Shown here: one piece after another, positions 32,346 through 64,000 of the stretch
Position numbering within the stretch: position 1 is the stretch's first letter
Layout of the letters: each line of letters begins with the position of its first letter
DNA from: Obrimoposthia wandeli
Lineage: Eukaryota
Reading direction: 5' to 3'
Assembly (NCBI GenBank): GCA_977020255.1
Contig: CDROCS010004142.1
Span: 1-64,000 of the forward strand
Length of the DNA: 64,000 nt
Notes under the pieces: model-generated
Database searches by the model: none
What the model saw: only the letters and a program-made list of their open reading frames with translations
Told to the model about the DNA's origin: nothing
Program-made: the position numbers and the translations under genes

Positions 32346-32356
32346 ACAAGCATAAT

Positions 32357-33681: not shown

Positions 33682-33693
33682 GCGGAGAATTTT

Positions 33694-48319: not shown

Positions 48320-48811
48320 AATATTCTTTTCTTAGAGAGTTATGAATAGGGTGAGAATGATGGCAAGTTCAAATGCTTGCTAAATTCTGCCCGCTGGATA
48401 GTTATTAAAATATTAATAAAGATGAATATGTTAATTGATAAAAATAATAAGAACCCAAGTTTGCTATTTTGCCCTTTCGCTTTTTGCACCGCAACCATTT
48501 AATATTAAAGGATAAATAAGTTAAAATAATATTCTCATTTAAAATCAGAGTGTTATCGAGATAAGTCCGGTTTATTTATTAGATCGTTGGCTGTTACTAA
48601 ATGTTCCGATGCAAGCTTTGATCTTCTCCTCTAGTAACCTTTCTTTATTCAAATGGCTTTATAGTTCTTTATCGCTATTTTGTATTCAAATTTCTCTTCT
48701 AAGCGCTATTTATGAATTAAATAATTTATTACTTAGATAGCCTGAGAGAAACCGTCTTTGTAAAGCAGATGTATTTTGTAGGATCATTAAATTCTTGATA
48801 AGGACTGTTAG

Positions 48812-49396
48812 ATGATTGATGAGGCTTTGGTTTTTATAAAAAATAATTTGAATCAATATATACATTTACAGTTGTTTAGTGGGGCTGATGAGGTCGTAGA
48901 GAATCATGTCGTGTTTCTTGAGGGCAATAGCTTAGAGTCTATTTCCTTTAGTAGTGGATTTGTTTCATTATTATTGGTCAACATTGAAGAGGAAAAAACA
49001 TTAAGGTCAGCTAATTTGTACAGCAGAGCCACACCTAACGGTTCAAGCGTAACGACTCGGCCAGAAATTAAGCTTAATCTTTATATCTTGTTTGTTGCAC
49101 GATTTGAGCAATACGAAACATCACTTAAATACATATCCTTAATTTTAAAATACTTCCAATCTAATCGATCATTTAGCGCCAATCAGGATGCAAATTTAAG
49201 TGCAGATATCGGTAAATTAAACATCGAATTAATAACTCAACAAGGCAATGAGTTAAATGAAATGTGGGGAACCTTAAAAATAGGTTATCAACCATCATTA
49301 TTATACAAACTCAGTTTGCTAGTGTTTATGGATGGAAGTATTGAACCCAAATCAGAGGTACAAAATATGGCACTTGATTTGAAGGATTCGGTTTGA
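48812..49396 (+). CDS. eCIS Afp16/Pvc16-like cap (tail terminator), DUF4255
   Basis: LVNIEEEK, LNLYILF.A.F..Y..SL..IS....FQ and WG.L...YQPS.LYK. Confidence 0.85.
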   Translation: MIDEALVFIKNNLNQYIHLQLFSGADEVVENHVVFLEGNSLESISFSSGFVSLLLVNIEEEKTLRSANLYSRATPNGSSVTTRPEIKLNLYILFVARFEQYETSLKYISLILKYFQSNRSFSANQDANLSADIGKLNIELITQQGNELNEMWGTLKIGYQPSLLYKLSLLVFMDGSIEPKSEVQNMALDLKDSV

Positions 49397-50268
49397 AATA
49401 TTTACCTCTCTTAGAGTTAACGATCAAGCATAACTATTACACAGCAGGTGTTTCAACTGACTTTAGTGTAATACCTGATGTGAATACTCAGCAGATGTTG
49501 CGAAATTATAAGTGTATTTGCAAAAAAAGCACGACGGGTTTTATTGTTTATCAAAGTGTTGAAACGCACCCAGTTAATGAAACGGGTGAGGCAGAAGCCG
49601 CTTTACAAGAAACCCCTTTTATTACGCTAGATCCCTCGCATCGCTTTATTTTTGATATGAAGCTAATTAACACTGATCATCATTTATTTACAGATTTCAG
49701 CGCACATTCAGCACAAAAACATAGTGACATTATTTATCTAACGGATGGATCAGGTTTAAATCAACAAACATTAACAATGACATCAATAGATTCAACAGTG
49801 CAAGGCAAGCACTTTGCTCAAATACATATTGGGTTAGAGGGCATTAAGCCTAGAGATATTGGGCATCAGCAGTATTTTCTTGAGTTTTCAGCCAAATCAC
49901 TACCTTGGCAATATTTTCTTATTGAAAATGAAAGCAATGATAACAACTCAGTTTTCTCTATTACTCATGAGACTAGCAATGAAGCTAATGGCATTCATTT
50001 TGAATCGGTTACTCCTTTAGAAAGTAAACTCTTCCACCACTTACAAAGTAGTTATCCAAATTCAACCATTCATTGCTTTCAATCAACAAGAGCAGTGGCA
50101 TGCCAGCAAAGTAGTCATAAAGGGATTCAATTAATGAGAGAGGGAGAAAATTTTATAGAAAATTTAGCTAACCCTACTCTTAGCAACATAAATCGTATTA
50201 ATGAAAAAGAGGAAGGTGGAGTCGCTACTCGAGATTACTTTTATCACGTAGTTACTCATATAACGTAA
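49393..50268 (+). CDS. eCIS-associated protein, candidate cap adaptor
   Basis: Coupled between cap and sheath genes; L..L.I.H.YY N-terminus; position matches the second cap gene of AlgoCIS-type loci (inference). Confidence 0.55.
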   Translation: MKYLPLLELTIKHNYYTAGVSTDFSVIPDVNTQQMLRNYKCICKKSTTGFIVYQSVETHPVNETGEAEAALQETPFITLDPSHRFIFDMKLINTDHHLFTDFSAHSAQKHSDIIYLTDGSGLNQQTLTMTSIDSTVQGKHFAQIHIGLEGIKPRDIGHQQYFLEFSAKSLPWQYFLIENESNDNNSVFSITHETSNEANGIHFESVTPLESKLFHHLQSSYPNSTIHCFQSTRAVACQQSSHKGIQLMREGENFIENLANPTLSNINRINEKEEGGVATRDYFYHVVTHIT

Positions 50269-50295
50269 AATCTATCAATCATAGGAAGTTAGAAA

Positions 50296-51987
50296 ATGGC
50301 CACTCAATATATGACTCCCGGTGTTGTTGTTGAAGAAGTTTCAACATTACCACCTTCAGTCGCCTCAGTATCAACGGCGATACCTGCTTTTTTAGGTTAC
50401 ACACAAAAATCAATGGCAACAGAAAGTCGCTCTCAAGTTTTAAGAATCAATAACATGCTTGAGTATGAAACGTATTTTGGTGGGCCATTATTGAAAGCCT
50501 ATACGGTGAATGTTAGTCAGGCTAGCCCTCAAGTTTGGGGGATTAATAGCATTATTAACAGTGATGAGGGACAACCTCAATTTAGCCTATATTATGCAAT
50601 GAGTATGTATTTTAAAAACGGTGGAGGAAGTTGCTACGTGGCCTCTTTAGGGGATTATGCTACGACACCTAAAGCTAAAGATTTTAGTACGGCTTTAGCG
50701 GCGATTGAAAGAGAAGATGAGCCAACTATCATCGTACTTTGTGATGGGTTATTACTAGATTCTGCTAAATATTATGCGCTTTGTCAGGAGGTTTTAAGCC
50801 AGTGTAATAAACTAGGTGATCGATTTGCAGTGTTTGATTTATTTGAAAGCGATGAAGACGGCGCTAACTTTAGAGGTGGCATAGGCACTAACTATTTAAA
50901 ATACGGCGCTGCTTATAGCTCCCATTTGATGACAACACTGACGTATCAATATCAAGAAGATAGCATTAATATTTCTGGCCTCCCCATTACTGCTGATCAA
51001 GCTAGTTGGGAGATTAGGCTGGGTGCTCATGGTATGCAAATTGGTTTTATCGGGCCTGTTGCAAGTGATCCTAAGTATAAAATTACTGCAGGTAGCGATG
51101 GAAGTGCTCTAAGTATCAACGTTAACGACGATGATATTTCGGTGTTGAATGCGCGAGGAAAGAGTGCGGTTGAAATACTAGTCGTTTGGGATGCATTGAA
51201 TGCTCAGGAGCAAGGTGGTTTTAGTCTTGAAACAATAGGCACCGGTTTAGATGAAGCAGGGAGCTTATTAAGTGGAGAAGGGATTACGACAACCGGTACA
51301 AGTAGTGAAAAATTAGCGCTAGTCGGCCCATTTCCGAGCTTAGGCAGTATAAAAGAAGATAAAACCGCGCTTTATAATTTGATTAAAAACCAGCTGTCTA
51401 AGCAATATGTACAACTAGCTTCCTCTTCGGCTGTTGCGGGTGTTTACGCCAGAGTTGATCGTGATAGAGGCGTTTGGAAAGCCCCTGCTAATGAGAGTCT
51501 TGCGGCTGTTATTGGACCCACTAAAAAAATAAACCACGATGAACAAGCGTTATTAAACGTGACACAAAGTGGTAAATCAATCAATGCAATACGTGCTTTT
51601 ACAGGCAAAGGAACCCTCGTTTGGGGAGCAAGAACCTTGGCAGGTAATGACAATGAATGGCGTTATGTCTCTGTGCGAAGACTGTTCAATATGATTGAAG
51701 AATCAAGTTTAAAAGCAACCGCCTTTGCGGTGTTTGAGCCTAATGATGCAACCACCTGGTTAAAAGTCAAAGCCATGATTGAAAGTTTCTTGTTCGGTTT
51801 ATGGGAACGTGGTGCTCTGGCAGGACCTACACCAGAATCTGCCTATTTTGTTCACGTAGGTTTAGGTAAAACCATGACAGCACAAAATATTTTAGAAGGC
51901 GTTATGAATGTTGAAATAGGCGTTGCAGCGGTAAGACCTGCTGAATTTATTGTTTTAAAGTTCAGTCATAAATTGCAAGAAGCTTAG
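50296..51987 (+). CDS. eCIS contractile sheath protein (Afp2/3/4-like)
   Basis: TPGV..EE, AIPAF.GYT, RGVWKAPAN, GART..GN..EWRYV.VRR and RPAEFI...FS. Confidence 0.96.
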   Translation: MATQYMTPGVVVEEVSTLPPSVASVSTAIPAFLGYTQKSMATESRSQVLRINNMLEYETYFGGPLLKAYTVNVSQASPQVWGINSIINSDEGQPQFSLYYAMSMYFKNGGGSCYVASLGDYATTPKAKDFSTALAAIEREDEPTIIVLCDGLLLDSAKYYALCQEVLSQCNKLGDRFAVFDLFESDEDGANFRGGIGTNYLKYGAAYSSHLMTTLTYQYQEDSINISGLPITADQASWEIRLGAHGMQIGFIGPVASDPKYKITAGSDGSALSINVNDDDISVLNARGKSAVEILVVWDALNAQEQGGFSLETIGTGLDEAGSLLSGEGITTTGTSSEKLALVGPFPSLGSIKEDKTALYNLIKNQLSKQYVQLASSSAVAGVYARVDRDRGVWKAPANESLAAVIGPTKKINHDEQALLNVTQSGKSINAIRAFTGKGTLVWGARTLAGNDNEWRYVSVRRLFNMIEESSLKATAFAVFEPNDATTWLKVKAMIESFLFGLWERGALAGPTPESAYFVHVGLGKTMTAQNILEGVMNVEIGVAAVRPAEFIVLKFSHKLQEA

Positions 51988-52024
51988 ATAAAGACATTTT
52001 GTTTATTATTGAGGAGATACCAGC

Positions 52025-52498
52025 ATGGCATTAACTAAGCAAGACATTCAGGCGAGTTACCCTTTACCTGTATATAACTACAGAGTTGAAATAGGGGGTG
52101 TTGCAATAGGCTTTTCTGAGGTATCAGGATTAACCATCGCCTATGAAACTTTTACTTATAAAGAAAGCCCGACAGGTAGCGGCGTTGCAGGGCCTAGAGT
52201 GTTTAATATGCCCTCACAATCTCAGGCAATCACAGTGACTTTGAAAAAAGGTATCGTGCCAATTGAAAGCTTAAGTTATTTATATAACTGGATCAAAGAA
52301 ATACAAACAAATCAGGTTGAGAAAAAGGATTTGCTGGTGAGCTTGTGCAATGAAAGTGGAGACCCTGTTATTACTTGGAGCGTTAATAATGCATTTCCAA
52401 CGAAGCTGGAGGGGCCAACTTTTGATGCAAATTCTAACGATGCAGCAGTCGAAAGTATTGAGCTAATAGCAGATAGTATCAGTATGAGCGAAGGCTAA
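52025..52498 (+). CDS. eCIS tube protein (Afp1-like, gp19 family)
   Basis: YPLP.YNY.V, FSEVSGL, L.L..E.G.P...W....AFP.K..GP.FDA.SN..A.E. Confidence 0.93.
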   Translation: MALTKQDIQASYPLPVYNYRVEIGGVAIGFSEVSGLTIAYETFTYKESPTGSGVAGPRVFNMPSQSQAITVTLKKGIVPIESLSYLYNWIKEIQTNQVEKKDLLVSLCNESGDPVITWSVNNAFPTKLEGPTFDANSNDAAVESIELIADSISMSEG

Positions 52499-52503
52499 TC
52501 ACA

Positions 52504-52980
52504 GTGGCTGTCAGCAAAAGTGAGATAAAAAACACTTACCCTTTAGCCATATACAATTACCAGGTCTCAATTAGTGATGACAGTAACATTCCTAGTATTA
52601 GTTTTGCAGAAGTATCAGGGTTAGCCATGGAGTATGAGCCTATCGTTTACAAACATGGGATGAGTTTTTTGATGGGAGATTCGCTCATCGCAGGGATGCA
52701 ACAACCGGTAAGAATATCTTTACTCAAAGGCGTGGTAAAGGGTGGGAATTATTTATATGACTGGATTTATCAAAGCCATAATCAGCCTTACTATGCGAAT
52801 GATCAGCGCGATATCTTTATTGATTTATGTGATGAGAAAGGTGAGCCAATTATTAGATGGGTAGTGAGTAAAGCACTGCCTATAAAGCTTGAAGCGCCTA
52901 CCTTTGATGCGAATAGCTCACAAGTTGCAATTGAAAGTATGGAGTTACAAGCAGCGACAATAAAGGTGGAATATCTTTAA
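52504..52980 (+). CDS. Second eCIS tube-family protein
   Basis: Paralogous motifs YPL..YNY.V, F.EVSGL and P.KLEAPTFDA. Confidence 0.9.
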   Translation: MAVSKSEIKNTYPLAIYNYQVSISDDSNIPSISFAEVSGLAMEYEPIVYKHGMSFLMGDSLIAGMQQPVRISLLKGVVKGGNYLYDWIYQSHNQPYYANDQRDIFIDLCDEKGEPIIRWVVSKALPIKLEAPTFDANSSQVAIESMELQAATIKVEYL

Positions 52981-53000
52981 ATACATGACAGGAGGTAAGT

Positions 53001-53474
53001 ATGGCTCATGCAGCGGCTAAAACTTTAGGCCAAGTCCCATTATTAGGTTATCGATTTTCAGTTGTTATTTTCAGTGGTGGGATACTGCCAAACCCGATTG
53101 ATTTTAGGTTTAAGAAAGTCTCCGGTATCAGTGCCAGTGTATCCACCATGAATGTTGAAGAAGGAGGGCAAAATTTATATAGCCATCGTTTACCTGAAAA
53201 AGTGCAATATGAAAATTTAGTGCTAGAAAGGGGAATGCCACTGGTTTCTTCTTTGGGCGTTGAATTTAGTAATTCGCTTTCTCTGTTTCAATTTTACCCC
53301 TCTAATATACTGGTTTCACTCTTAGATGAGGCCGCCTTGCCTGTCTCTAGCTGGCTGTTTATAAAGGCTTACCCTGTTAGTTGGAGCTTGTCGGATTTAG
53401 ATGCTGAAGCTAATAGCATAGCGATTGAAACAATGGAATTAGCTTACGAGCGATTTCAGACAATAAGGTTGTAA
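53001..53474 (+). CDS. Afp5-like tube initiator protein
   Basis: D.RF.KVSG, EGGQN...H.LP....Y.NLVLERG and AYPV.W..SD.DA. Confidence 0.9.
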   Translation: MAHAAAKTLGQVPLLGYRFSVVIFSGGILPNPIDFRFKKVSGISASVSTMNVEEGGQNLYSHRLPEKVQYENLVLERGMPLVSSLGVEFSNSLSLFQFYPSNILVSLLDEAALPVSSWLFIKAYPVSWSLSDLDAEANSIAIETMELAYERFQTIRL

Positions 53475-53479
53475 ACAAA

Positions 53480-53641
53480 ATGCCTGTTGAAATAAGAGAG
53501 TTAGTGATAAGAGCCGTGGTCAACGATAGCTCATCAAGCAGTGAGACGCGTCAACAAATAGATGAAACTGAGCGGCAGCTGGTTATTCAAGAATGCGTGC
53601 GGGAAATAATGAAATTACTGGAAAAAAATAAAGGGCGGTAA
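53480..53641 (+). CDS. Afp6-like small protein (DUF5908), absent from the ORF track
   Basis: 53-aa MPVEIRELVIRAVV...ECVREIMKLL read by hand. Confidence 0.88.
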   Translation: MPVEIRELVIRAVVNDSSSSSETRQQIDETERQLVIQECVREIMKLLEKNKGR

Positions 53642-53646
53642 CTGAA

Positions 53647-54357
53647 ATGGATTTTAGTGACACTTTCAAACTTGAAAAACTAACGATTCAAGCGGTTGAG
53701 ATTAAAGAAGGTAAAAAAAACAGTCTAACGGGGGATGCATTTCAAGTAATGTTTAATCCGCAAAGTGTCGCTCAACGCATCGCTAATAAACTAATAAAAA
53801 CGCCATCAATTAATGAAAATTCTGCTGATGAAACCCAATTCGCGGGTGCCGAACCTGAAATCTTAGATTTATTGCTCACTCTAGATGGAACAGGAGTTAA
53901 AGATTATGCTGCTGCTTTAGGGTTAGGTGGGGCGAGTAAAACGGTAACAGAACAGATAAGTGAGTTTAAAAAGTTATGTTATGACGTGGATGGTGAAAAA
54001 CACGAACCCAATGTCGTGAATGTAAGATGGAATAAAGTGATTGACGCTAATTATCGATTGGGATCCGTCGATATAGTATATAAATCCTTTGCCAGAAATG
54101 GAGAACCCCTTCGAGCAGAGTTGAAAATATCATTTCTCAAATACTCTTCTGTTGTGAATGCCAGCAGCGCAATGTCGTCCCCTGATGTATCACATATTCA
54201 TAGGGTAAAAACAGGCGATACACTGCCTTTGTTAGCTAACAAAATTTATGGCTCACCCAAATACTACTTATTGATAGCAGCGGCTAATAACTTAGATAAT
54301 TTCAGATCTCTAGAACCCGGAACACAGCTTTCTTTTCCTCCATTACGCTCAAAATAG
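53647..54357 (+). CDS. Afp7-like tube initiator with LysM domain
   Basis: F.VMFNP, G.PLRA...ISF and H.VK.GDTLP.....IYG. Confidence 0.92.
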   Translation: MDFSDTFKLEKLTIQAVEIKEGKKNSLTGDAFQVMFNPQSVAQRIANKLIKTPSINENSADETQFAGAEPEILDLLLTLDGTGVKDYAAALGLGGASKTVTEQISEFKKLCYDVDGEKHEPNVVNVRWNKVIDANYRLGSVDIVYKSFARNGEPLRAELKISFLKYSSVVNASSAMSSPDVSHIHRVKTGDTLPLLANKIYGSPKYYLLIAAANNLDNFRSLEPGTQLSFPPLRSK

Positions 54358-54370
54358 AGAGATGAAATAG

Positions 54371-56020
54371 ATGGCACCTACAACAATAACAATCCAGAGC
54401 GAAGGTCAAGCACTCGCTACACACTATAAAATTATTAGCGTGGATGTGATTAAACAAGTAAATCGTATCCCTTGTGCAGAGATCGCTTTAGTTGATGGCA
54501 ATATCGCACAGCAGACGTTTGCGTTGAGTGAAGATGATTTTTTTGACTTAGGTAAAGAGATAGAGATCAAATTACGCCGGGAAGGCAGCGATGAATTTAC
54601 TGTCTTTAAGGGTTTAGTGAGCAAACAAAACATTGAAGCCAGCGAGCATGGTTCTCAATTGATCGTTAGTTTAGATGATATTGCTATTAAAGCGGCGCAA
54701 TTGCGCAACACTTGCCTGTATGAAGAGCAAACCGATGCGGACATTATCACTAGCCTGATCGAAAAACATAACTTGACGCTCGCCAGTATTGAGGCGACAG
54801 AGCCTGAACACCTGCAGTTAACACAGTACAACTGTACCGATTGGGATTTCATGCTTTTAAGAGCGCAGAGCCAAGGGTTAATCGTCAATGTTGATGATGG
54901 CGTAATGTCTGTTGTCGCCGTCGATTTAAGCCAGGACCCCCACTATAAGTTTGAATACGGGTTAAGTGGTGTACATGGAATTAAACGCTTTGAAATGCAA
55001 AATGATGCATTAGCTAATTATGAAGCACTTAAAACTCAACACTGGGATATGAGTTTGCAAGAGAGTAGTGGAATTGAAGCTAATGCAGATCTTGCATTAC
55101 AACAAGGCGCATTTTCGATTTCAAAAAATGCAGAGACATTTACCACCCAAGAACACTACTTACACGCACCAATCAGTTTAGATTCTCAAGAGGTGCAAGC
55201 TTGGTTAAATGGAAAAATCATTCGAAGTCGTCTTGCGCGCTTTAAAGGCAGTATTAGCGTGTCGGGTATCGGCGAGATAAAGCCATTAATAATGGTAGAG
55301 ATAAAAGGGTTAGGTTCAAGATTTAATGGCAAAGCCTTGGTGACTGGGGTTCGCCATCGAGTGAGTGTCTCACAAGGCTGGGTCAGCGATTTACAATTGG
55401 GGCTAAATGACAGCGATTTTGCTGCAAATACCGCCATTAATGATCATCCAGCAGCGGGGTTATTAACAGGAGTCAATAGTCTTTGTATTGGAAAAATCGC
55501 GCCTTTTGAAGAAGACCCCAAACAAGAGTTTCGTTTAAAAGTGCAACTGGTCGCCGTGGGTGAAAAACCTATTTCAATATGGGCAAGAATAGCCAATATG
55601 GATGCAGGTAAAACTCATGGTAGCTTTTTTTATCCAGATGAAGGAGATGAAGTAGTCGTAGGGTTTTTTAATCAAGACCCACGTCATGGCGTTATATTAG
55701 GCAGCATGTACAGCTCTGCCAGCCCACCTATTGAAGATTGGGGAACGCTTGATGAAGACAATTTTAAAAGAGGGTTTGTCACTAAATCAGGTAGTAGGAT
55801 TGAGTTCAGTGATGAAGCAGAAGCCAAAATATTGATCAAAACAGCGACAGAGAATCAAATATTACTCGATGATGAAGCCAAAGAAATTAGCGTAACAGAT
55901 CCACACGGCAATAGCATTGTCATGAGCGAAGCGGGAATCACCATCACCAGTTGTAAAGACTTGATTGTAAAAGCTGAAGGTAAGGTCAGTATTACCGGTG
56001 AAGAGGTTGACATTAAATAG
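54371..56020 (+). CDS. Afp8-like VgrG spike
   Basis: VNRIP.A.I...DG, QY.CTDWDF...RA and WAR.A..DAG...G.FF.P..GDEV.VGF...DPR...ILG. Confidence 0.94.
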   Translation: MAPTTITIQSEGQALATHYKIISVDVIKQVNRIPCAEIALVDGNIAQQTFALSEDDFFDLGKEIEIKLRREGSDEFTVFKGLVSKQNIEASEHGSQLIVSLDDIAIKAAQLRNTCLYEEQTDADIITSLIEKHNLTLASIEATEPEHLQLTQYNCTDWDFMLLRAQSQGLIVNVDDGVMSVVAVDLSQDPHYKFEYGLSGVHGIKRFEMQNDALANYEALKTQHWDMSLQESSGIEANADLALQQGAFSISKNAETFTTQEHYLHAPISLDSQEVQAWLNGKIIRSRLARFKGSISVSGIGEIKPLIMVEIKGLGSRFNGKALVTGVRHRVSVSQGWVSDLQLGLNDSDFAANTAINDHPAAGLLTGVNSLCIGKIAPFEEDPKQEFRLKVQLVAVGEKPISIWARIANMDAGKTHGSFFYPDEGDEVVVGFFNQDPRHGVILGSMYSSASPPIEDWGTLDEDNFKRGFVTKSGSRIEFSDEAEAKILIKTATENQILLDDEAKEISVTDPHGNSIVMSEAGITITSCKDLIVKAEGKVSITGEEVDIK

Positions 56021-56040
56021 CACTTTAAAGGGGACTTGTC

Positions 56041-56232
56041 ATGAAACGCATCACTTTAGATTTAAAGGTAGATGAAGCCAATTTAGTTTTAGAGGGGTTA
56101 GCGAACTTGCCTTTTATTAAAGTACATGAGCTGATCGCCAAAATCCATCAACAAGCCAGCACCCAAGTTGTTGATATTAAGACAGGTACTGAAAGTTTTA
56201 ATGAACAACCAGATAGCGTAATAGCGGGGTAA
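56041..56232 (+). CDS. Small eCIS-associated hypothetical protein
   Basis: 63 aa, AAGGGG RBS, in operon context. Confidence 0.7.
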   Translation: MKRITLDLKVDEANLVLEGLANLPFIKVHELIAKIHQQASTQVVDIKTGTESFNEQPDSVIAG

Positions 56233-56236
56233 ATGC

Positions 56237-56665
56237 ATGGCTGACTCATCTACATTTTTAGGAAAAGGCTGGGCTTTTCCTCCCTCTTTTGGTGCACAAG
56301 GTAAGCAAGTGGCAATGGTTGCAGAGGCTCAAAATATACATCAATCATTACAGGTTTTATTTGCAACAAGTATAGGAGAGCGGGTGATGTTGGAAAGTTA
56401 TGGATGTCGCTTGACTGACTTTATATTTGAAGAGATTGATCAGGGACTCGCCAATAACATCACCAGCATGCTGCAAAATGCGATCAACCACCATGAGCAA
56501 CGCGTTATCTTAGATAGCATTGAAGTGAGCCAACATGATGATGTGCAGGGGTTACTCAATATTAGTATGAGCTACACCATTCGCACAACGAACTCTAGAT
56601 ACAATATGGTATATCCCTTTTTCGTAAGTGAATCAAGAATGAGTAAGGTCACTTTAAATGTCTGA
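56237..56665 (+). CDS. Afp9-like gp25 baseplate wedge protein
   Basis: FLG.GW.FPP.F, T..GERVM...YG, E.RV and TNSRYNMVYPF. Confidence 0.94.
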   Translation: MADSSTFLGKGWAFPPSFGAQGKQVAMVAEAQNIHQSLQVLFATSIGERVMLESYGCRLTDFIFEEIDQGLANNITSMLQNAINHHEQRVILDSIEVSQHDDVQGLLNISMSYTIRTTNSRYNMVYPFFVSESRMSKVTLNV

Positions 56666-57083
56666 TTTTATTGTAGTAGATGGAGACAAAGCACTTTTTA
56701 TACCCAGTTTTGGAGCAGCCATTGTGGTGGTGCAACCTGGTTCTATAACCGGTAGTGGTGATGCTACATTTGCCAATAAAAAAATATGCATTGAAGGTGA
56801 TGAAGCGTCAGTGAGTGTCACAGGTTGCATGTATATGACGCCTCAATACTCAATACCCGGCTCAGGTACCATTACTATCGATTCTCTTAGCAATGATCAA
56901 GTGAGCCTTAAAACATCCACTAAAGCGACACTCATGATAATGGTAGGGGCTAATTTTGATGCGAAATTTAGTGTGCAAGTGCCAGCGCAACAACCGGGCA
57001 GTCCTCCTGTGCCAGACTCCACAGCGGATTATGCCGGTAAGGGCAGTTTCATTACCACCAACACTAAGTTTAAAGGGAGTTAG
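56658..57083 (+). CDS. Candidate non-canonical spike-tip (PAAR-like) protein
   Basis: 141 aa, Gly/Pro-rich beta-type sequence between gp25 and Afp11; no canonical PAAR gene after the spike. Confidence 0.5.
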   Translation: MSDFIVVDGDKALFIPSFGAAIVVVQPGSITGSGDATFANKKICIEGDEASVSVTGCMYMTPQYSIPGSGTITIDSLSNDQVSLKTSTKATLMIMVGANFDAKFSVQVPAQQPGSPPVPDSTADYAGKGSFITTNTKFKGS

Positions 57084-57085
57084 CG

Positions 57086-60000
57086 ATGCCGATTAGTTCG
57101 AATCAGCGGCCTATTTATAGGGATGGAACGAGTCAACCAAATCGTATAAAAGCAGCACTTTCTCCCGAGTCTGTTGCCATTGATGGGCGCACAACTAAAG
57201 AGTTATTACATTTCATAAGGCAGTTTTGTAGTCAAATAAATTATTTTAATGATGAGGGAATAATCAATGGCGATTGGCAAGAGTTTTTTCCAAAGAGTAT
57301 TGATTTAGATGATTTAATGGCCTTTATGGACGACCCAAGCACGGCCACGACTGTTCAACTGGCGCTGTATCAGCGCCCGCATTTCGTTTTATTATTAAGC
57401 TTTTTAGCGTTATTAAAACAAACACAATCAAAATTAAATACCATAAGTAAACGGCACATCGATTTTTATTATCAGCGTTTTTTAGGTTTAAGTAAACAGC
57501 CTGCACAAGCTGACCAGGTAAACGTATTAATTGAATTAGCAAAATACACTGAGCAGCATTATTTAAAGGCGGGAACTTTACTAAATGCAGGAAAAAGCGA
57601 AGCAGGTACTGCACTTATTTATGAGACACAAAAAGGCGCTTTTTTGAGCCAAGCACGGGTCGCTCGCTTAAGCAGTCTTTTTACTGATGTCGACTATGTA
57701 AATATCAGTAAGGCAAGAGATGATTATATTAAAAATAAACCCAGGGCAACGTCATTAGAAATACTGTTAATGATGCTGCAATTTGCTTTAGGTTATCCAG
57801 AACCTAACAATGCGTTACCTGATTACGAAGGTATATCTAGCGGCGAGCCTAGTGCACCGAGTATTGAGTTATTACGCGTTCTCAAAATACAGCTGGCATT
57901 TGTAGATAGAACAAGTGCTGGACTACATATGACCTTCACTGATTTCAATGAATTAATGCGATTAAAGAATCAACGCTTACCTGATCAGCAAGTTGAAGTC
58001 GATAGGCAGTTGCAAAGTGGTTTTACGCAAGACTGGAAGCAAATAAACAATGTTTTAGTGGAGATAGCGCGCGTAAAAGGCGTGGTGCTAAGTATTGCTG
58101 ATAATCAAATAACCGATTTTGATAAAAACTTACTTAAAGCTTTGAATAACAACGAGCTAGACTTTTCTGGATTGGTAGGCGTTAACAATATAACGGACTT
58201 GTATCACGAACGAACGCGTAATGATGCGAAAAATTTTGTTATTACAATGTTAGGAATTGAAGTGGAAAATAGTAGTGCTTCGCTGACATTTGTCAAAATG
58301 ATGCAGGTAAAAGTACGTATAGATTTACAGTGGGCGCGGATTAATTATTTATTAGAACAGGCGGCTTTAAATAAAAATAAAATCATTAATATTGATCCTC
58401 AACATTCTGATGCATTTCAAATTAATTTAGAAAAGCTACTGCTTAATGAAAATACAACATCTATTGATTGGCCGAATAACATCAATAGTATTGATGAATT
58501 ATATAGCGCATTACGTCAGTTAGAAAAATATTTCCACCTTGCGGCTTATGAGTTTAGTTATCTATTAAATATAATAGTCAGTGATAGTTTAAACCTAGAT
58601 GGCGTATCTGTTAGTTCAATACAGTGGGCGTCGATTGATAAAATTTTATTAAAAGCGGCAAAAGATAAACGCCATGAGCAGCGTGTTGAAATACTTAATA
58701 ACTTGTCTCAGTCAGCAAGCGCTTCTAACAAAGGCAGTGTGCAACAAATAATCGCGACCATGCTCAGCCATGTATTGTCCAAACCAGTAAAGGTGGAGCA
58801 ATTAGAGTCAGCATTCGCTGAAATTAAAACGTGGCTAAATGAGGATGATTTAAGTTATTTACGTCATTACATCAAGATAAACTCAACTGATATCCCTGAT
58901 TGGGGCAAGGTAGAGGCGATGTTGTTAGGTGCCTGGCAGCAGATTTTGGGCCCAGACATTCCTCAACTTATTCATTGGAAAAACCTATATGCTTTTGATG
59001 ATGCAAAAAAAGCTAACAAGTCTATTGCGCTAGATCAGGTGCAGGCAGAGCGCTGGGCTACCTTTGCGAGAAAAATTAAAGCCAGTGATGATATTGATCC
59101 TCAAAGTAGTGAATTTGGTTGGGCTATTAGCTCACCCATTTTGGTATTAAGTCAGGGGCAACGTGAAGTAAGGCTTACCTTAAACATAGAGCCATTAGTC
59201 ATCGATATTAAAAAAATCACTGAGGTTATTGCTCAACAGCCGTTTAAGTTGTTAGCCAGTACCACTGATGGTTGGATAGAGCCTGAGCAGCTGACATTAG
59301 AAGTAGTGATGGATGACAAAAATGAATCGCTAATAGCATTACATATTAAGCTAATTTTTTCTGCTCAAGCAGCGCCGATTATTTGTGTACCTAATGAAGA
59401 GGCACAAAACAACCCTAAGGTGCAGTGGCCTACGCTTAAAATTCTATTGCGCCATATCTTAATAACAAGCGATGCTCAAGAGGAGGGTGCTTCAAATAAT
59501 ACTGAGTCATCCCAAGTGCAATATCGAACTTATTATCAAGAATTTAAGCCACTGGTTTTAAATAGTATAAATGTTGAAGTAGCGGTGACAGGGTTAAAGG
59601 ATATTTACATTAGCAATGATGAAAAAACATTAGACATCAATAAGCCTTTTTATCCGTTTACGCAGCTCCCTGTTGTGGGAAGCCGATTTTATATAGTGCA
59701 TCAAGAATTGGTTTACAAAAAGCTAGATCAGATAGTCTTTAATGCACAGTGGATGGCGTTGCCAAAGGCTTTGGATGTCCATTACCATGGGTATCCTAGC
59801 TTAAATAGTTTAAAAGATGGAGAAGAAAACTTCACCGTAGAAGTCGCTATTAAAGATGAATATATAAAAGAGTCTATTATCTCTCCTATCTCTGTCATGT
59901 TATTAGAAAACGAGCTAAAAGTGGATCGCATTACCAGTACACAAGAGGCTTCTTACGATAGGGATTTATCTCTAAAACCTGCGGGTAGCGTTAAAAAGTG

Positions 60001-61534
60001 GGGCAGATATTTACAATGGGAACTCAATTCACCTGATTTTCAACATACAGATTATCCAGCACTGGCAGGGGCAAGTGCAACTCAGCTTGCCATAGATTTA
60101 GTCAATAAAAATGGCAAATTGGATAAAAAAGATTACTTAATAAATCCGCCTTATACACCTAAACTAAAAACGTTGAGCATAGATTATAAAGCCTCTGTCA
60201 TGATTGATGTCAATAGCTTTAGGGATGAGCAACATGCAGAGAGGATGTTTCACATACAGCCCTTTGGCTATGCTGAATATGCGCTAGAGAGCAATATAGA
60301 GCGCTATTTACTGCCACAATTTAACAACCAAGGTGAGCTCTATATTGGTTTAGAAAATGTCCTTTTACCGCAAAACTTAAGTGTGTTGTTACAAATGGCA
60401 GAAGGTAGCAGTGATGCCGACGTTAAGCCTCAAAGTGTTTCTTGGAGCTACCTTAGTGATAACCAATGGGTGGCGTTAGCAGGTGATAGCGTGATGAGTG
60501 ATGGCACTCGTGGCTTAATTAATTCAGGGATTATTGAGTTTGCATTAGTGGCGGTTAAAGCGAATACATTGCTACCTAATGACCTGTTTTGGTTACGTGC
60601 CAGCATTGAAAATAACACCCGAAGTGTTTGCGATATGGTAGCGGTGCATACACAAGCGGTACAAGCATCTTTTGTAATACCTGCGAGTATAGATCAAAAA
60701 AAACATGTATTGGCAGCTGATAGTATTAAAAAGCTATTGAAGGCAGAGCCACAAATAAAAAAAATAAAGCAACCCTATAGCTCTTTTGGGGGGCGCGAGA
60801 GCGAGCCAGATGAGGGGTTTTATCGGCGTATTAGTGAGCGTTTACGCCACAAAAATAGAGCGTTAAACCAATGGGATTATGAACATATAATTTTACAACA
60901 GTTTCCACAAATTTATAAAGTGAAATGCATTCCCGCTTCATTACTAAGCACTGATGAGCCAGTGGGAACGATTAAGTTAATCGTGATACCTGATATTCGC
61001 CAACGTTTTCCGTTTGATCCATTTGAGCCCAAAGTACCGGCAAATTTGATTTACAGCATCAATCAATTTTTAGCGGATAAAAAAGCTGCATCAGCAAAAA
61101 CCTTGGTGGCTAACGCTCAATACATCCCAGTAAAAGTCCAATTAGGGGTGAAGTTCCACTCAGGCTTTAATCCCGAATATTATCAACAACAACTTAATAA
61201 TCAGTTAAATCAGTTTTTATCACCTTGGGCTTATGAACAAGGGCGCGATATTGTCATTGGTGGAAAAATATACGCAAATAGCATTATTCATTTCATTGAA
61301 CAGCGTGAATACATTGATTACGTCACAGATATTAAATTGTTTAAAGGAATTGAGCAGCAGTCTGTAGAACCCGGGGATGCTGAAGGATATTTCGTTGAAG
61401 CAGATCAGGTGGACGCCGTTTTAGTAGGCGCTCAGCAGCATCAATTTGATGTGTTAGTCGATAAGGTTTTTCAAACAGAATCTTCAATTGGCATTAATTA
61501 CATGGAAATCGAATTAGATTTTCAGCTAGTTTAG
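57086..61534 (+). CDS. Afp11-like baseplate protein (1482 aa) with a large repeat insertion
   Basis: RDGTSQ..R, PH..L.L.FL, FYY...L, QP..SFGG..E, RISERLRHKNRA...DYE and NPWAY-like SPWAY. Confidence 0.93.
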   Translation: MPISSNQRPIYRDGTSQPNRIKAALSPESVAIDGRTTKELLHFIRQFCSQINYFNDEGIINGDWQEFFPKSIDLDDLMAFMDDPSTATTVQLALYQRPHFVLLLSFLALLKQTQSKLNTISKRHIDFYYQRFLGLSKQPAQADQVNVLIELAKYTEQHYLKAGTLLNAGKSEAGTALIYETQKGAFLSQARVARLSSLFTDVDYVNISKARDDYIKNKPRATSLEILLMMLQFALGYPEPNNALPDYEGISSGEPSAPSIELLRVLKIQLAFVDRTSAGLHMTFTDFNELMRLKNQRLPDQQVEVDRQLQSGFTQDWKQINNVLVEIARVKGVVLSIADNQITDFDKNLLKALNNNELDFSGLVGVNNITDLYHERTRNDAKNFVITMLGIEVENSSASLTFVKMMQVKVRIDLQWARINYLLEQAALNKNKIINIDPQHSDAFQINLEKLLLNENTTSIDWPNNINSIDELYSALRQLEKYFHLAAYEFSYLLNIIVSDSLNLDGVSVSSIQWASIDKILLKAAKDKRHEQRVEILNNLSQSASASNKGSVQQIIATMLSHVLSKPVKVEQLESAFAEIKTWLNEDDLSYLRHYIKINSTDIPDWGKVEAMLLGAWQQILGPDIPQLIHWKNLYAFDDAKKANKSIALDQVQAERWATFARKIKASDDIDPQSSEFGWAISSPILVLSQGQREVRLTLNIEPLVIDIKKITEVIAQQPFKLLASTTDGWIEPEQLTLEVVMDDKNESLIALHIKLIFSAQAAPIICVPNEEAQNNPKVQWPTLKILLRHILITSDAQEEGASNNTESSQVQYRTYYQEFKPLVLNSINVEVAVTGLKDIYISNDEKTLDINKPFYPFTQLPVVGSRFYIVHQELVYKKLDQIVFNAQWMALPKALDVHYHGYPSLNSLKDGEENFTVEVAIKDEYIKESIISPISVMLLENELKVDRITSTQEASYDRDLSLKPAGSVKKWGRYLQWELNSPDFQHTDYPALAGASATQLAIDLVNKNGKLDKKDYLINPPYTPKLKTLSIDYKASVMIDVNSFRDEQHAERMFHIQPFGYAEYALESNIERYLLPQFNNQGELYIGLENVLLPQNLSVLLQMAEGSSDADVKPQSVSWSYLSDNQWVALAGDSVMSDGTRGLINSGIIEFALVAVKANTLLPNDLFWLRASIENNTRSVCDMVAVHTQAVQASFVIPASIDQKKHVLAADSIKKLLKAEPQIKKIKQPYSSFGGRESEPDEGFYRRISERLRHKNRALNQWDYEHIILQQFPQIYKVKCIPASLLSTDEPVGTIKLIVIPDIRQRFPFDPFEPKVPANLIYSINQFLADKKAASAKTLVANAQYIPVKVQLGVKFHSGFNPEYYQQQLNNQLNQFLSPWAYEQGRDIVIGGKIYANSIIHFIEQREYIDYVTDIKLFKGIEQQSVEPGDAEGYFVEADQVDAVLVGAQQHQFDVLVDKVFQTESSIGINYMEIELDFQLV

Positions 61535-61546
61535 TGAGGAATAGTC

Positions 61547-62728
61547 ATGAATATAAACACTAAAAGCCGTAGTGAGTTAAAAACGTTTTTTCGTAAGAAC
61601 AGTATACCCACAGAAAGTAATTTTGCAGATTTTATTGATGGCATGTCAAATGCTAAAGATGATGGTTTAGTTAAGACTCCGGGTAATCCATTAAGCATTG
61701 AAGCGAGTGCGGGTAGCACGCTAGAAATACTTAATCTGTATTTAAATATAGAAGACACTAATCCTATGTTCTCTTTTGCTCTCAACGATGGTTTTAGTAT
61801 TAACGACCACGCGAATAATAGCCGGCTATTCATTGATAAAAGTAGCGGCAATATAGGCATTGGCACAATTAACCCTAAGTTTCCCCTAGATATAGCGGGA
61901 GACATGAGTGCACAAGGCAGCATTGTTCCCTCTTTAGGTGATGGCAGTAATAAAGGGATTGTTTTCCCTAAAATAGGCGTTGATGCCGCAGCTCTTCAAT
62001 ATTACTCCCAAGGTAGAGGCAAAACGGTGCTAGAAATAAGTAACAGCAATGGCATTAATGATCATGTTGCATTAATGGCCAGTGGCAATGTCGGTATAAA
62101 CACCAAAGATCCTAAAGCCAAACTACATATTAATTTTGAAAATAATGTGCAAAAAGCAAAAATTAGCGGCACCTTCATTATTGGTGCCACTAACGCAACA
62201 CATCTAGCGTTTGATCATAATGAAATTATGGCTAAAACCAGTGCCACGAAAGCGGGCACCCTCTTCTTACAAAATGAAGGGGGAGTCGTGCACATTGGCG
62301 GTAGTTTGAAAGTGGCTAGTGGGATAGTTCAGCAAGATTGGCAAAGCGTCAGTTTTGTGAATGGTTGGGTTAATTATCATGGTAGTACATATAACAGAGC
62401 AGGTTATTTTAAGGACAGTCAAGGAATTGTGCATTTAAAAGGTTTAGTTAAAAATGGCAGTAGCACTATCTTTACCTTACCGAATGGTTATAGGCCAAGT
62501 AGGCAAGAGTTATTCAGTGCTATTGCTAATAGTAAAATTGCTAGAGTGGATGTACACAAAAATGGAGCAGTAAAAATGGTTCTAGGCGAAGGTGCATGGC
62601 TAAGTTTAGATGGCCTTAGTTTTAGAGCGGCAGCTCCATCTATTATTGGTCCTATCGGTCCTATTGATCCTGTTGTTCATACCGATCCTGTTATCGGTAT
62701 TGGTGTTTTAAATTCTCGTTTTAGATGA
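61547..62728 (+). CDS. eCIS tail fibre / adhesin (Afp13-like)
   Basis: N-terminal R.ELK.FF....IPTE.NF.D.ID anchor, GNIGIGT..P and GNVGI.T..P repeats, C-terminal W....F.NGW...Y.KD..G.V.L.G domain. Confidence 0.8.
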   Translation: MNINTKSRSELKTFFRKNSIPTESNFADFIDGMSNAKDDGLVKTPGNPLSIEASAGSTLEILNLYLNIEDTNPMFSFALNDGFSINDHANNSRLFIDKSSGNIGIGTINPKFPLDIAGDMSAQGSIVPSLGDGSNKGIVFPKIGVDAAALQYYSQGRGKTVLEISNSNGINDHVALMASGNVGINTKDPKAKLHINFENNVQKAKISGTFIIGATNATHLAFDHNEIMAKTSATKAGTLFLQNEGGVVHIGGSLKVASGIVQQDWQSVSFVNGWVNYHGSTYNRAGYFKDSQGIVHLKGLVKNGSSTIFTLPNGYRPSRQELFSAIANSKIARVDVHKNGAVKMVLGEGAWLSLDGLSFRAAAPSIIGPIGPIDPVVHTDPVIGIGVLNSRFR

Positions 62729-62776
62729 GGATAGTATTGAAAATAATTATATAAAGCGAATCAAAGTTGAGTGCCT

Positions 62777-64000
62777 ATGGAAAATTATCAACATAAAATT
62801 GCCGAATCCAAGTTAGATATCAGTGAAGACTACGCAGCGCTTCGCCAGTTGGGTATTGATTATATCTCTCGCTTGGGCAGTGAACAATGGACAGATTACA
62901 ACAGCCATGATCCGGGCATCACTATTTTAGAGCAAGTGTGTTACGCAATGACTGATTTGGGTTATCGGATGAATCACAGTATGAGCGATCTGCTTGCTCA
63001 AGGAGGCAAAGATCCATATGACAGCTTAATTGATGCGCCGCAAATATTGAGCTCGAACCCTGTCACATTAATGGATTTGCGCAAGTTGATTATCGATATA
63101 AAAGGTGTCAAAAACGCCTGGATAGAACCGGTACTTAGCCCACAGCCCGCACTGTATTTTAATAGAGAAAAGAAACAACTGAAACTCCAACCAGGTGAAG
63201 AGTTAGTGGAGCCTGTCGTGTTACAAGGCCTTTATCAAGTATTAGTTGAGCCTGATAGAGATTTTCAAAATGATTTGTATGCCAGAGTTGCACAAAGGTT
63301 ACATGCGCATCGTAACCTCTGTGAAGATTATAGTGAATTGAGCATACTCACGCCGCAAAAAATACAGTTGCATGCACGCATTGAAATTTCAGCGCAGCAA
63401 GATGCTGAACAATTATTGCAAAATATATTCAGCGCGATTGAAACGTATTTTTCAGCCCCCGTTAATTTTTATAGTTTGAATGAATGTTTACAAAAAGGCC
63501 TGCTGATAGATGATATTTTTAATGGTGTGCAACTTGAACATGGCTTTATTGACACTTTACAATTGCAGCAATTAGAGCGGCGTACGCAGATACGCATCTC
63601 TGATTTGATTCAGATTATTATGGCGGTTGCTGGTGTCAGGACTGTACAACGTATTCGCTTTGAAATAAAAGGTGAAGAAGAATCAGCTATCCCTAATGAT
63701 TGGTTGCTGACCCTTGATCAAGGGGCTTTTTCTCAATTAGATTTACATAATAGTGATTTTATTTTGGTGAAAGAGCAATTACAAATAAGCCTTCCTAAAG
63801 CGGATGTTATCAGTCGTTATCGCCAATTAAAGCGTGAGCAAAAAATAACACAGTCAACACGTAGTAATGTTCCAGAGTTACCCAGTGCGAGAACAAGAAA
63901 TATAGAACAATACACTTCAATAATGCATCAATTCCCCGATGCTTATGGTGTTAACGCCAACGGACTCGCTCAAAGTGAAGGGCGCAAACGCTTAGCTCAA
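62777..64000 (+). CDS. Afp12-like baseplate protein, partial (runs off the window)
   Basis: Open for all 408 codons when read by hand; WTDYN.HDPGITILE..CYA.TDLGYR, RNLCED and HQFP..YG. Confidence 0.93.
   Translation, partial: MENYQHKIAESKLDISEDYAALRQLGIDYISRLGSEQWTDYNSHDPGITILEQVCYAMTDLGYRMNHSMSDLLAQGGKDPYDSLIDAPQILSSNPVTLMDLRKLIIDIKGVKNAWIEPVLSPQPALYFNREKKQLKLQPGEELVEPVVLQGLYQVLVEPDRDFQNDLYARVAQRLHAHRNLCEDYSELSILTPQKIQLHARIEISAQQDAEQLLQNIFSAIETYFSAPVNFYSLNECLQKGLLIDDIFNGVQLEHGFIDTLQLQQLERRTQIRISDLIQIIMAVAGVRTVQRIRFEIKGEEESAIPNDWLLTLDQGAFSQLDLHNSDFILVKEQLQISLPKADVISRYRQLKREQKITQSTRSNVPELPSARTRNIEQYTSIMHQFPDAYGVNANGLAQSEGRKRLAQ

Follow-up and report, generated by a model that had tools for sequence, protein, structure and literature searches.

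We analysed a 64,000-nt stretch of DNA (hereafter the window), which contains no N letters. Positions 48812-64000 of the forward strand are occupied, without interruption, by 15 tightly packed genes of a phage-tail-like contractile injection system (CIS), with intergenic gaps of -8 to +48 nt. None of the 15 genes contains an internal stop, all are full length against their homologues as far as the window reaches, and their lengths agree with those in the closest relative almost to the residue. Pfam assigns 12 of the 15, with E-values of 1e-08 to 1e-50, and the families include the eCIS-specific Pvc16_N, CIS_tube, CIS_spike_tip and DUF5908; chance similarity is therefore excluded. Moreover, Pfam or PDB matches for sheath, tube, gp25, VgrG spike, PAAR-like tip, Afp11 and Afp12 all fall within this single operon. 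A preliminary description of this DNA had proposed an apparently intact structural operon running from cap to Afp12. Within the window this holds, and every gene it named lies where it had been placed. Two small genes had been overlooked, one for a DUF5908 plug and one for a conserved 63-aa protein, and the order is complete only as far as a partial Afp12, since the window ends at 64000 inside that gene, and tape measure, ATPase and cargo genes would lie beyond.

The first gene (48812..49396) encodes a short cap protein of the Afp16/Alg16A type, 194 aa in length and composed of a Pvc16_N domain only (Pfam 3.7e-26). Its PDB matches are tCIS All3327 (7e-16), which is the best, the AlgoCIS cap (4e-14) and SalCIS (9e-14). 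The adjoining gene (49393..50268) encodes a 291-aa protein that gave no Pfam match and, searched as a single sequence, no PDB match. We found 372 homologues, and the family profile matches SalCis16b (3.9e-16), tCIS All3326 (2e-12) and the AlgoCIS cap adaptor (4.5e-12). Furthermore, an AF2 model of the protein (pLDDT 92) returned only two significant Foldseek matches, 7b5i_AB of tCIS (5.5e-11) and 7adz_1A of AlgoCIS (7.4e-10). Profile and fold both show that this second cap-region gene, already noted as such in the preliminary description, is a true cap adaptor of the Alg16B/SalCis16b type adjoining a short cap.

A single contractile sheath protein of 563 aa follows (50296..51987; Pfam Phage_sheath_1C 2e-11). 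It matches the sheaths of AlgoCIS (3e-124), tCIS (1e-114), SalCIS (4e-101), Pvc2 (2e-61) and Afp3 (3e-56) in the PDB. By bit score AlgoCIS (clade Ib, 418), tCIS (clade IIa, 387) and SalCIS (clade Ib, 342) lead, values that do not separate clade Ib from II. Downstream of the sheath lie three Phage_T4_gp19 genes, so that the count of one sheath and three tube-family genes given earlier was correct. The first two encode Afp1-like tube paralogues of 157 aa (52025..52498; Pfam 1e-33) and 158 aa (52504..52980; Pfam 2e-24); paralogue 1 is 58-61% identical to its counterparts in relatives and 38% identical to paralogue 2. The third, also of 157 aa (53001..53474; Pfam 2e-29), is an Afp5/Pvc5/Alg5-like tube protein of the layer adjoining the baseplate, with best PDB matches to Pvc5 (3.5e-28), AlgoCIS 7aeb_Y (4e-27) and Afp5 (1.5e-26), and just 6e-09 to Afp1.

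The next six genes encode plug, spike and small baseplate components. A 53-aa DUF5908 protein (53480..53641; Pfam 1.3e-15) corresponds to the Afp6/Alg6 'plug', the role described for Alg6 in PMC8894135, and a gene is also found at this position in relatives. It is followed by an Afp7-type tube initiator of 236 aa (53647..54357; Pfam CIS_tube 2.6e-35, LysM 6.5e-05) and an Afp8-type, VgrG-like central spike of 549 aa (54371..56020; Pfam Phage_base_V 2.7e-17, Phage_GPD 2e-06). Adjoining the spike gene is the 63-aa ORF (56041..56232), which has no assigned role and found no match in Pfam, PHROG or PDB searches. Homologues are present in 8 relatives, 39-70% identical across the first ~43 residues; in 6 of these 8 the gene sits between VgrG and gp25, a place that in the closest relative is taken by a gene for 64 aa. 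The gp25-like baseplate wedge/sheath initiator of Afp9 type (142 aa; 56237..56665; Pfam GPW_gp25 1.9e-19) and the PAAR-like spike tip of Afp10 type (141 aa; 56658..57083; Pfam CIS_spike_tip 2.4e-50 over its full length) complete this group.

The largest gene (57086..61534) encodes a giant baseplate protein of the Afp11/Alg11 type (1482 aa; Pfam Baseplate_J 1e-08). Residues 655-1472 align to residues 257-1044 of Alg11 in the PDB (2.8e-119), with tCIS All3317 scoring 7.6e-113, and the N-terminus (residues 10-203) aligns to residues 12-218 of Alg11. Judged from these alignments, the protein carries the Alg11 extension that makes the spike cage in AlgoCIS, and it may form a cage here too. Between the two aligned parts lies a further insertion of ~450 aa (residues ~204-654), which is conserved in 10 relatives, gave no Pfam match and is not an internal repeat. 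At the window end, an Afp12/Alg12-type baseplate protein is represented by its first 408 codons (62777..64000). This part is 39% identical to a 717-aa homologue in one relative (L001), and its PDB matches are Alg12 (4.8e-66), tCIS All3315 (8e-61), Pvc12 (3e-21) and Afp12 (3e-19).

A fibre gene had been proposed between the two baseplate genes, and homologues, PHROG and fold all bear this out for the 393-aa product of 61547..62728. The protein is laid out as a conserved two-helix N-terminal anchor, a shaft of GNVGIGT-type repeats and a C-terminal head (residues ~260-360); the N-terminus is conserved in the alignment and its two helices are predicted by the AF2 model, in which the head reaches pLDDT >90. 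Some of its 123 homologues are named tail fibre and some bear Peptidase_S74 or C1q domains, and the PHROG matches (1e-9 to 1e-12) are to tail fibre or receptor-binding families. Foldseek matched the head to Bdellovibrio fibres, Listeria phage PSA gp15 (rmsd 2.7-3.5 A over 118 columns) and lactococcal phage RBP heads. Sequence and model therefore both identify the gene as a fibre, whose head is predicted to adopt a phage receptor-binding protein fold. The fibre matched no AlgoCIS chain by sequence or by fold; it is of another family than the downward Alg19 fibre and at another position. Its N-terminus is eBAP2-like, as judged from the description of eBAP2-type eCIS fibres in PMC12923769. The likeness consists of a conserved helical N-terminus of ~50 residues and a gene directly after the Baseplate_J gene. 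Moreover, C1q or Peptidase_S74 modules are found on homologues of the operon fibre that share this N-terminus, one of which is a C1q protein from Aquimarina, and these modules and the Aquimarina C1q fibre are among the eBAP2 examples of PMC12923769. The heads differ, in that the operon fibre resembles PSA gp15 and lactococcal RBPs whereas PMC12923769 cites an Acinetobacter phage RBD for mini-fibres.

At least eleven relatives, drawn from several phyla, share this gene order, including the placement of the fibre gene between Afp11 and Afp12; Thiothrix, Calditrichaeota, Acidobacteriota and myxobacteria are among their sources. In the syntenic loci Afp12 is followed by one or two unknown proteins, a CIS_TMP tape measure and an AAA ATPase; two loci then have a 1292-aa gene (Endonuclea_NS_2) or a 1653-aa gene, a large putative effector. 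By this synteny such genes would lie just past the point at which the window stops, in agreement with the earlier expectation that tape measure, ATPase and effector would be found beyond it.

Sheath, gp19 tube, gp25, Baseplate_J and VgrG families are common to myophage tails, and the window stops short of the region where head genes might be, so we considered whether the operon is a prophage tail module or an R-type tailocin. We regard this as extremely improbable. Four of the Pfam families found, namely Pvc16_N, CIS_tube, CIS_spike_tip and DUF5908, belong to CISs, no cap adaptor is known outside such systems, and phage and pyocin sheaths match the operon sheath at 2e-07 or worse, against 3e-124 for AlgoCIS. 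In every syntenic relative CIS_TMP and the AAA ATPase follow, with no head or lysis genes, and the ±10-kb flanks of the two relatives with gene tables hold no capsid, portal or terminase gene. Furthermore, no integrase, tRNA, capsid, portal or terminase gene was found upstream of the operon in the window, where the genes are metabolic and regulatory rather than phage.

The operon is preceded by an AT-rich intergenic region of 492 bp (48320..48811), presumed to hold the promoter or other regulatory sequence, and the gene on the far side of that region is read in the other direction. A consensus promoter scan of this region found sites no more numerous than in shuffled sequence, and no promoter was assigned. 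Several other genes of the 64-kb window are damaged or short: an aldo/keto reductase is interrupted by an in-frame stop, an ABC exporter is split into two pieces, and a luciferase-like gene adjoining the operon spans only two thirds of its profile. The preliminary description had also placed the DNA in a gammaproteobacterium, which we could not uphold; the Prx-Grx protein is nearest to Vibrio/Photobacterium at only 55% identity, and the BCCT transporter has marine relatives.

These interrupted and shortened genes, together with the position of the rest of the operon beyond 64000, would fit a locus in decay, of which the visible part is intact, the downstream part is broken or truncated and no particle is made. 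All 15 visible CIS genes are full length against homologues, however, including the 1482-aa ORF that a single lesion would most likely strike, and we consider decay improbable.

The closest solved homologues throughout are AlgoCIS and tCIS (sheath, Afp11, Afp12 and cap in PDB searches). That the operon would be closer to AlgoCIS than to Serratia Afp is borne out by bit scores of 418 vs 194 for the sheath, 403 vs 125 for Afp11 and 226 vs 72 for the Afp12 N-terminus. AlgoCIS (Algoriphagus machipongonensis; PDB 7ADZ/7AEB; PMC8894135; dbeCIS clade Ib) is the top solved match for sheath, Afp11 and Afp12. It shares with the operon a short cap that has the Pvc16_N domain only, a cap adaptor encoded after it, a DUF5908 plug, one sheath gene, an Alg5-like layer and a much-extended Afp11, the alignment of the operon protein covering the part of Alg11 that makes the cage. 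The two differ in sheath length (563 aa in the operon vs 692 aa in AlgoCIS) and in that the operon has two Afp1-like tube paralogues, the additional conserved 63-aa gene and an Afp11 ~430 aa longer than Alg11, the ~450-aa insertion having no Alg11 counterpart. The cargo of AlgoCIS consists of DUF4157 proteins. Any link to MACs, which had also been suggested, has as its sole basis that MACs and AlgoCIS are both of clade Ib (PMC8894135).

Nearly as similar is the thylakoid-anchored tCIS of Anabaena PCC 7120 (PDB 7B5H/7B5I; PMC8894136; clade IIa), with E-values of 1e-114 for the sheath, 8e-113 for Afp11 and 8e-61 for Afp12; its Afp12 homologue All3315 has a chain of 1335 aa, compared with ~700 aa in the subclade of the operon. 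SalCIS of Salmonella enterica subsp. salamae (PDB 9R9H/9R9N/9RCE) is likewise cap-first, with a single sheath (4e-101), a large Cis11 and the cap adaptor that the profile of the operon adaptor matches best, whereas in Afp11 and Afp12 its similarity to the operon is much lower (1e-44 and 7e-19). Serratia Afp and Photorhabdus PVC (clade Ia) have the core parts list and the general contraction mechanism in common with the operon, at far lower protein similarity than AlgoCIS and tCIS. In contrast to the operon they have three sheath paralogues, a long cap encoded last in the order, no cap adaptor, a short Afp11 (607-728 aa) and adenovirus-like fibres encoded after Afp12.

Gene content, alignments and predicted folds taken together, this region is very probably the 5′ part (~15 kb) of a chromosomal CIS operon of the cap-first, cap-adaptor type, a judgement on what kind of operon this is, namely a CIS operon of the AlgoCIS/tCIS type, and not on the extracellular mode. 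The operon belongs to a widespread, already described type, of which it is an ordinary further example.

As to the mode of action, we take release as a free particle (eCIS mode) to be the most likely one, at somewhat better than even chances, because the fibre has a phage-type receptor-binding head and none of the 15 genes codes for a membrane-anchor protein. The same machine may instead be cell-associated, either anchored in the inner membrane as in T6SSiv or SalCIS, or cytoplasmic and acting on lysis or stress as in tCIS or the Streptomyces CIS. The scores of sheath, Afp11, Afp12 and cap against the thylakoid-anchored Anabaena CIS come close to those against AlgoCIS, the cap-adaptor profile is best against the membrane-associated SalCIS, and anchored and free systems occur within the same clades in the literature, clade Ib including both the membrane-anchored SalCIS and T6SSiv. 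In SalCIS the transmembrane amidase SalCis19 is present, inner-membrane anchoring has been proposed and the 'fibre' has been proposed as the anchor. No SalCis19-like transmembrane protein occurs among the 15 genes of the operon, and none of their products has a hydrophobic, transmembrane-like segment, although the sequence past 64000 could still encode an anchor. The fold of the fibre head, that of phage and Bdellovibrio receptor-binding domains, and the fit of its N-terminus to the description of the eBAP2 anchor of eCIS fibres also argue against cell association, which we hold to be unlikely yet worth serious consideration.

By analogy with solved relatives, assembly of the particle would begin with nucleation of the baseplate by spike, plug and tube initiator, the VgrG spike being sharpened by the PAAR-like tip. 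Tube and sheath would then polymerise to a length set by the tape measure and be terminated by cap and adaptor, the hexameric cap with its adaptor closing the distal end, and the AAA ATPase may aid assembly or cargo loading. Once the fibre heads attach to a ligand on a surface, probably a glycan, the baseplate would open and gp25 would trigger sheath contraction, driving tube, spike and lumenal cargo into the target.

Lastly, we suggest, tentatively and as the less probable view, that a separate CIS subtype, without a structurally or functionally characterised member, is made up of the operon together with its syntenic relatives. Its markers may be two Afp1-like tubes with one Afp5-like tube, the conserved 63-aa protein adjoining the spike gene, an Afp11 of ~1450-1500 aa with the conserved ~450-aa insertion that is absent from AlgoCIS, a short Afp12 of ~700 aa and an eBAP2-type fibre between both baseplate genes. 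Since the head fold is that of phage and Bdellovibrio binders of bacterial surfaces, the natural targets could on this view be other bacteria and not eukaryotes. A similar fibre head is also found in other, cyanobacterial CIS loci, in which the gene order is different.

The operon consists of 15 genes on the plus strand in one unbroken run from position 48812 to the end of the window, with an intergenic spacing of -8 to +48 nt. None of the 15 genes contains an internal stop and the window holds no N characters. Pfam matches identified a Pvc16_N cap (48812-49396), a sheath (50296-51987), three gp19-type tube proteins (52025-52498, 52504-52980 and 53001-53474), a DUF5908 protein (53480-53641), a CIS_tube+LysM protein (53647-54357), a VgrG-type spike (54371-56020), gp25 (56237-56665), a CIS_spike_tip protein (56658-57083) and a Baseplate_J protein of 1482 aa, Afp11 (57086-61534). 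The first and second tube genes are Afp1-like paralogues, and the third is Afp5/Pvc5/Alg5-like. Three further plus-strand ORFs have no Pfam match: a cap adaptor of 291 aa (49393-50268), assigned by profile and fold, a 63-aa ORF (56041-56232), and a fibre of 393 aa lying between Afp11 and Afp12 (61547-62728), assigned from its homologues, PHROG and fold. The last gene, which begins at 62777 (+) and continues past the window end, is a partial Afp12/Alg12 homologue, matching Alg12 at 4.8e-66 and Afp12 at 3e-19 in a PDB sequence search. Pfam and ORF calls thus agree with the gene list of the preliminary description, which had overlooked only the DUF5908 gene and the 63-aa ORF. The CIS operon is real and intact-looking, and is cut off by the window end. 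Its GC content (0.37-0.41) is not distinct from the rest of the window, it contains no tandem repeats, and Rfam and tRNA scans of the window returned no match. Consensus promoter and terminator sites were no commoner than in shuffled sequence, and therefore no regulatory site is claimed.

Window proteins were compared with all PDB chains, and the order of likeness was consistent between proteins. The sheath was closest to that of AlgoCIS (3e-124), followed by the thylakoid-anchored tCIS of Anabaena (1e-114), SalCIS (4e-101), PVC (~1e-61) and Afp (~1e-56); phage and pyocin sheaths matched at 1e-07 or worse. The same order held for Afp11 (AlgoCIS 3e-119, Anabaena tCIS 8e-113, SalCIS 1e-44, PVC 6e-41, Afp 1e-35), and the cap and Afp12 follow the same pattern. 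Therefore, the earlier reading of the locus as AlgoCIS-like rather than Afp-like is borne out. By the same measure the locus is nearly as tCIS-like as AlgoCIS-like, and since the literature places AlgoCIS in clade Ib and tCIS in clade IIa, similarity alone does not fix its clade. Several differences set the locus apart from AlgoCIS. AlgoCIS has a longer sheath, and its Alg11 is without the ~450-aa insertion seen in the window Afp11, whereas the window locus has a second Afp1-like tube, an extra 63-aa gene, and a fibre that differs in both kind and position.

The 291-aa ORF 3′ of the cap has 372 homologues in the representative library. A profile built from 71 of these matched SalCis16b (3.9e-16), Anabaena All3326 (2e-12) and the AlgoCIS cap adaptor (4.5e-12), and no other PDB sequence. 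Its AlphaFold model is confident (pLDDT 92), and Foldseek returned two significant matches only, both cap-adaptor chains, from tCIS (5.5e-11) and AlgoCIS (7.4e-10). The ORF is a cap adaptor, a component absent from clade Ia systems such as Afp.

For the 393-aa fibre gene we found 123 homologues, several of which bear the name tail fibre or contain a Peptidase_S74, C1q or collagen module, and the PHROG matches were to proteins of the tail fibre, minor tail and receptor-binding kinds. The alignment resolves into a conserved N-terminus of ~100 residues, a variable shaft with repeats of the GNVGIGT type, and a conserved C-terminal domain of ~110 residues predicted at pLDDT >90. In superposition, the model of this domain fits the gp15 head of Listeria phage PSA (rmsd 2.7-3.5 A, 118 alignment columns), and also lactococcal phage RBP heads and Bdellovibrio fibres. 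Therefore, the protein is a fibre bearing a phage-type receptor-binding head. The family appears to have been catalogued already, as the eBAP2 class of eCIS tail fibres (PMC12923769), described as having a helical N-terminus, a gene after Baseplate_J and C1q or S74 modules, with a C1q example from Aquimarina. The window fibre agrees by description on each of these points, its C1q- or S74-bearing relatives including an Aquimarina C1q protein. The head itself (residues ~260-360, window 62324-62630) is 45-58% identical to fibre heads in far more distant CIS loci (L014, L016, L015, L022, L010, L020, L027 and L032), which include Nostoc, Okeania, Microcystis, Anaerolineales, Melioribacteraceae and Alphaproteobacteria. 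The other genes of those loci match the window weakly or not at all, and from these comparisons the head looks like a module exchanged among CIS types.

Two further features are shared with relatives. The 63-aa ORF has no match in Pfam, PHROG or PDB. A homologue occurs in 8 relatives of different phyla, with 39-70% identity over the first ~43 residues, and sits between the VgrG and gp25 genes in 6 of the 8; the protein may be an undescribed conserved CIS component. In one Thiothrix locus (L002) this homologue is found after gp25, not before. In Afp11, residues 10-203 align to Alg11 12-218 and residues 655-1472 to Alg11 257-1044, leaving an insertion of ~450 aa (residues ~204-654, window 57695-59047, +) with no match in Pfam or PDB. 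An internal duplication was ruled out as its source. The insertion is kept in 10 syntenic relatives, at 24-31% identity.

Exact look-ups of two window proteins returned no database record, and single-protein scans of genome and metagenome contigs with the Afp12 N-terminus gave no close relative. The closest database relative is a 28-kb JGI metagenome contig (sample 3300045300, proteins P0001 and P0121), with identities of 68% in the sheath, 59% in the fibre and 45% in the cap adaptor; a single-protein scan with its fibre gave no match. Judged from its gene table, the contig has the gene content and order of the window with nearly equal lengths. Its cap gene is preceded, at ~0.9 kb, by an AraC/GyrI-like regulator, and the window has no AraC gene in the equivalent position. 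3′ of the fibre it carries Afp12 (708 aa), a protein of 588 aa, CIS_TMP and an AAA ATPase, and then a 1292-aa protein bearing an Endonuclea_NS_2 domain.

The fibre alignment, run against species-representative genomes, yielded 37 loci, to which L001 was added from an exact-protein look-up. Once window proteins had been mapped onto these, the window gene order was recovered in 10 loci, namely L001, three Thiothrix genomes and six MAGs (Geminicoccaceae, Acidobacteriota, one labelled Enterobacteriaceae, Calditrichaeota, Polyangiaceae and the unclassified L017), giving at least 11 syntenic relatives with the JGI contig. The fibre lies between Afp11 and Afp12 in all 10, and wherever the contig reaches far enough, Afp12 is succeeded by two proteins of ~200 aa each and then by tape measure and ATPase. 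The preliminary description had predicted such downstream genes beyond the window, and for this genome they stay a prediction that synteny in relatives supports well. In high-GC relatives, ORF-calling noise 3′ of the ATPase precluded the naming of cargo genes. A Kofleriaceae locus (L003) shares the layout and has an additional fibre-like gene between tape measure and ATPase. Two fibre genes, or a partial duplicate, are seen in L003 (2946-3359 and 10001-10981) and L013 (8459-9367 and 10001-11167). The Thiothrix loci (L002, L004 and L008) gave no tblastn match to the window CIS_spike_tip protein. Plasmid-borne sheath relatives were rejected as cultured comparators; Iodobacter, the one inspected, differs in gene order, with Pvc16 last.

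Beyond the top match, sheath identity levels off at ~55% over many phyla, and at least 8000 proteins pass 1e-30 with the window sheath. The family is thus very large, and its spread over many phyla suggests horizontal transfer. The architecture of the operon is a widespread one, akin to that of AlgoCIS and tCIS. A prophage or tailocin was rejected on account of the CIS-specific families, the cap adaptor, the CIS-type continuation in relatives and the absence of phage genes upstream.

The window locus itself gives a parts list and folds, and we infer assembly order, cage, trigger and release from solved homologues. Together with gp25, Afp11 and Afp12, the spike (VgrG and a PAAR-like tip), plug and LysM tube initiator would nucleate the baseplate. 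Rings of Afp5-like and Afp1-like tube and the sheath would then polymerise along the tape measure, the cap and cap adaptor would terminate the particle, and the tube lumen would house cargo. Ligand binding by the fibre heads would be signalled via Afp12, Afp11 and gp25 to cause sheath contraction. An extracellular mode is probable, though by no means certain, because the fibre bears a receptor-binding head and no transmembrane-like segment was found in the 15 proteins. Related systems that are anchored or intracellular exist alongside extracellular ones, and a machine of the former kind is conceivable here, if rather unlikely.

Research on CISs treats them both as mediators of interactions among microbes and between microbe and host, and as programmable particles for protein delivery; they are reported to be enriched in marine Proteobacteria. 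The locus adds an apparently intact CIS whose sheath shares no more than 68% identity with that of its nearest database relative. It leaves the current picture of CISs unchanged, related sheath genes being in public data by the thousands, and highlights a widespread uncharacterised architecture. A giant Afp11 with insertion, the 63-aa protein and, between Afp11 and Afp12, an eBAP2-like fibre carrying an RBP head would mark this architecture, which may be a subtype with bacterial targets.

Lastly, 5′ of the operon lie ordinary chromosomal genes, including a MocR-type regulator, aldolases, a DHDPS-family enzyme, a Che-like cluster, c-di-GMP enzymes, a BCCT transporter and ABC exporters. Marine relatives of the BCCT transporter reach 85% identity (78% in Pelagibius, Roseobacter and Roseovarius), and its named matches are mostly alphaproteobacterial. 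Against plasmids and chromids, a Prx-Grx protein is nearest to Vibrio and Photobacterium at 55% identity, a loose pointer to Vibrionaceae and other Proteobacteria. These relatives make a marine bacterium a plausible source of the locus, and a gammaproteobacterium, as the preliminary description has it, would be compatible with them. The Che-like cluster (30075-35259, +) encodes CheR and CheD, an MCP that looks soluble and carries four PAS domains, and a protein in which three CheW domains are present; the neighbouring ORFs that were examined included neither CheA nor CheY. The first ~14 kb of the window, with many ORFs without family match and partly low GC (0.34-0.37), may be a defence or genomic island. 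It holds a ParD-like antitoxin (491-808, +), a SAD/SRA-domain protein (2550-3212, +) weakly matching type IV methyl-directed restriction enzymes, and an AbiEi/AbiEii pair (type IV toxin-antitoxin/abortive infection; 12188-12586 and 12576-13472, +; PADLOC 1e-47 and 1e-84). An MsbA-like ABC exporter on the minus strand is apparently split into membrane-domain and ATPase ORFs in different frames (15568-16506 and 14709-15455), adjoining an intact fused partner (16503-18371). An in-frame stop divides an aldo/keto reductase into two ORFs (20026-20514 and 20521-21018, +; profile positions 1-149 and 163-290). Immediately 5′ of the operon, a luciferase-like monooxygenase (47591-48319, -) covers positions 12-227 of a 314-position Pfam profile and may be truncated.
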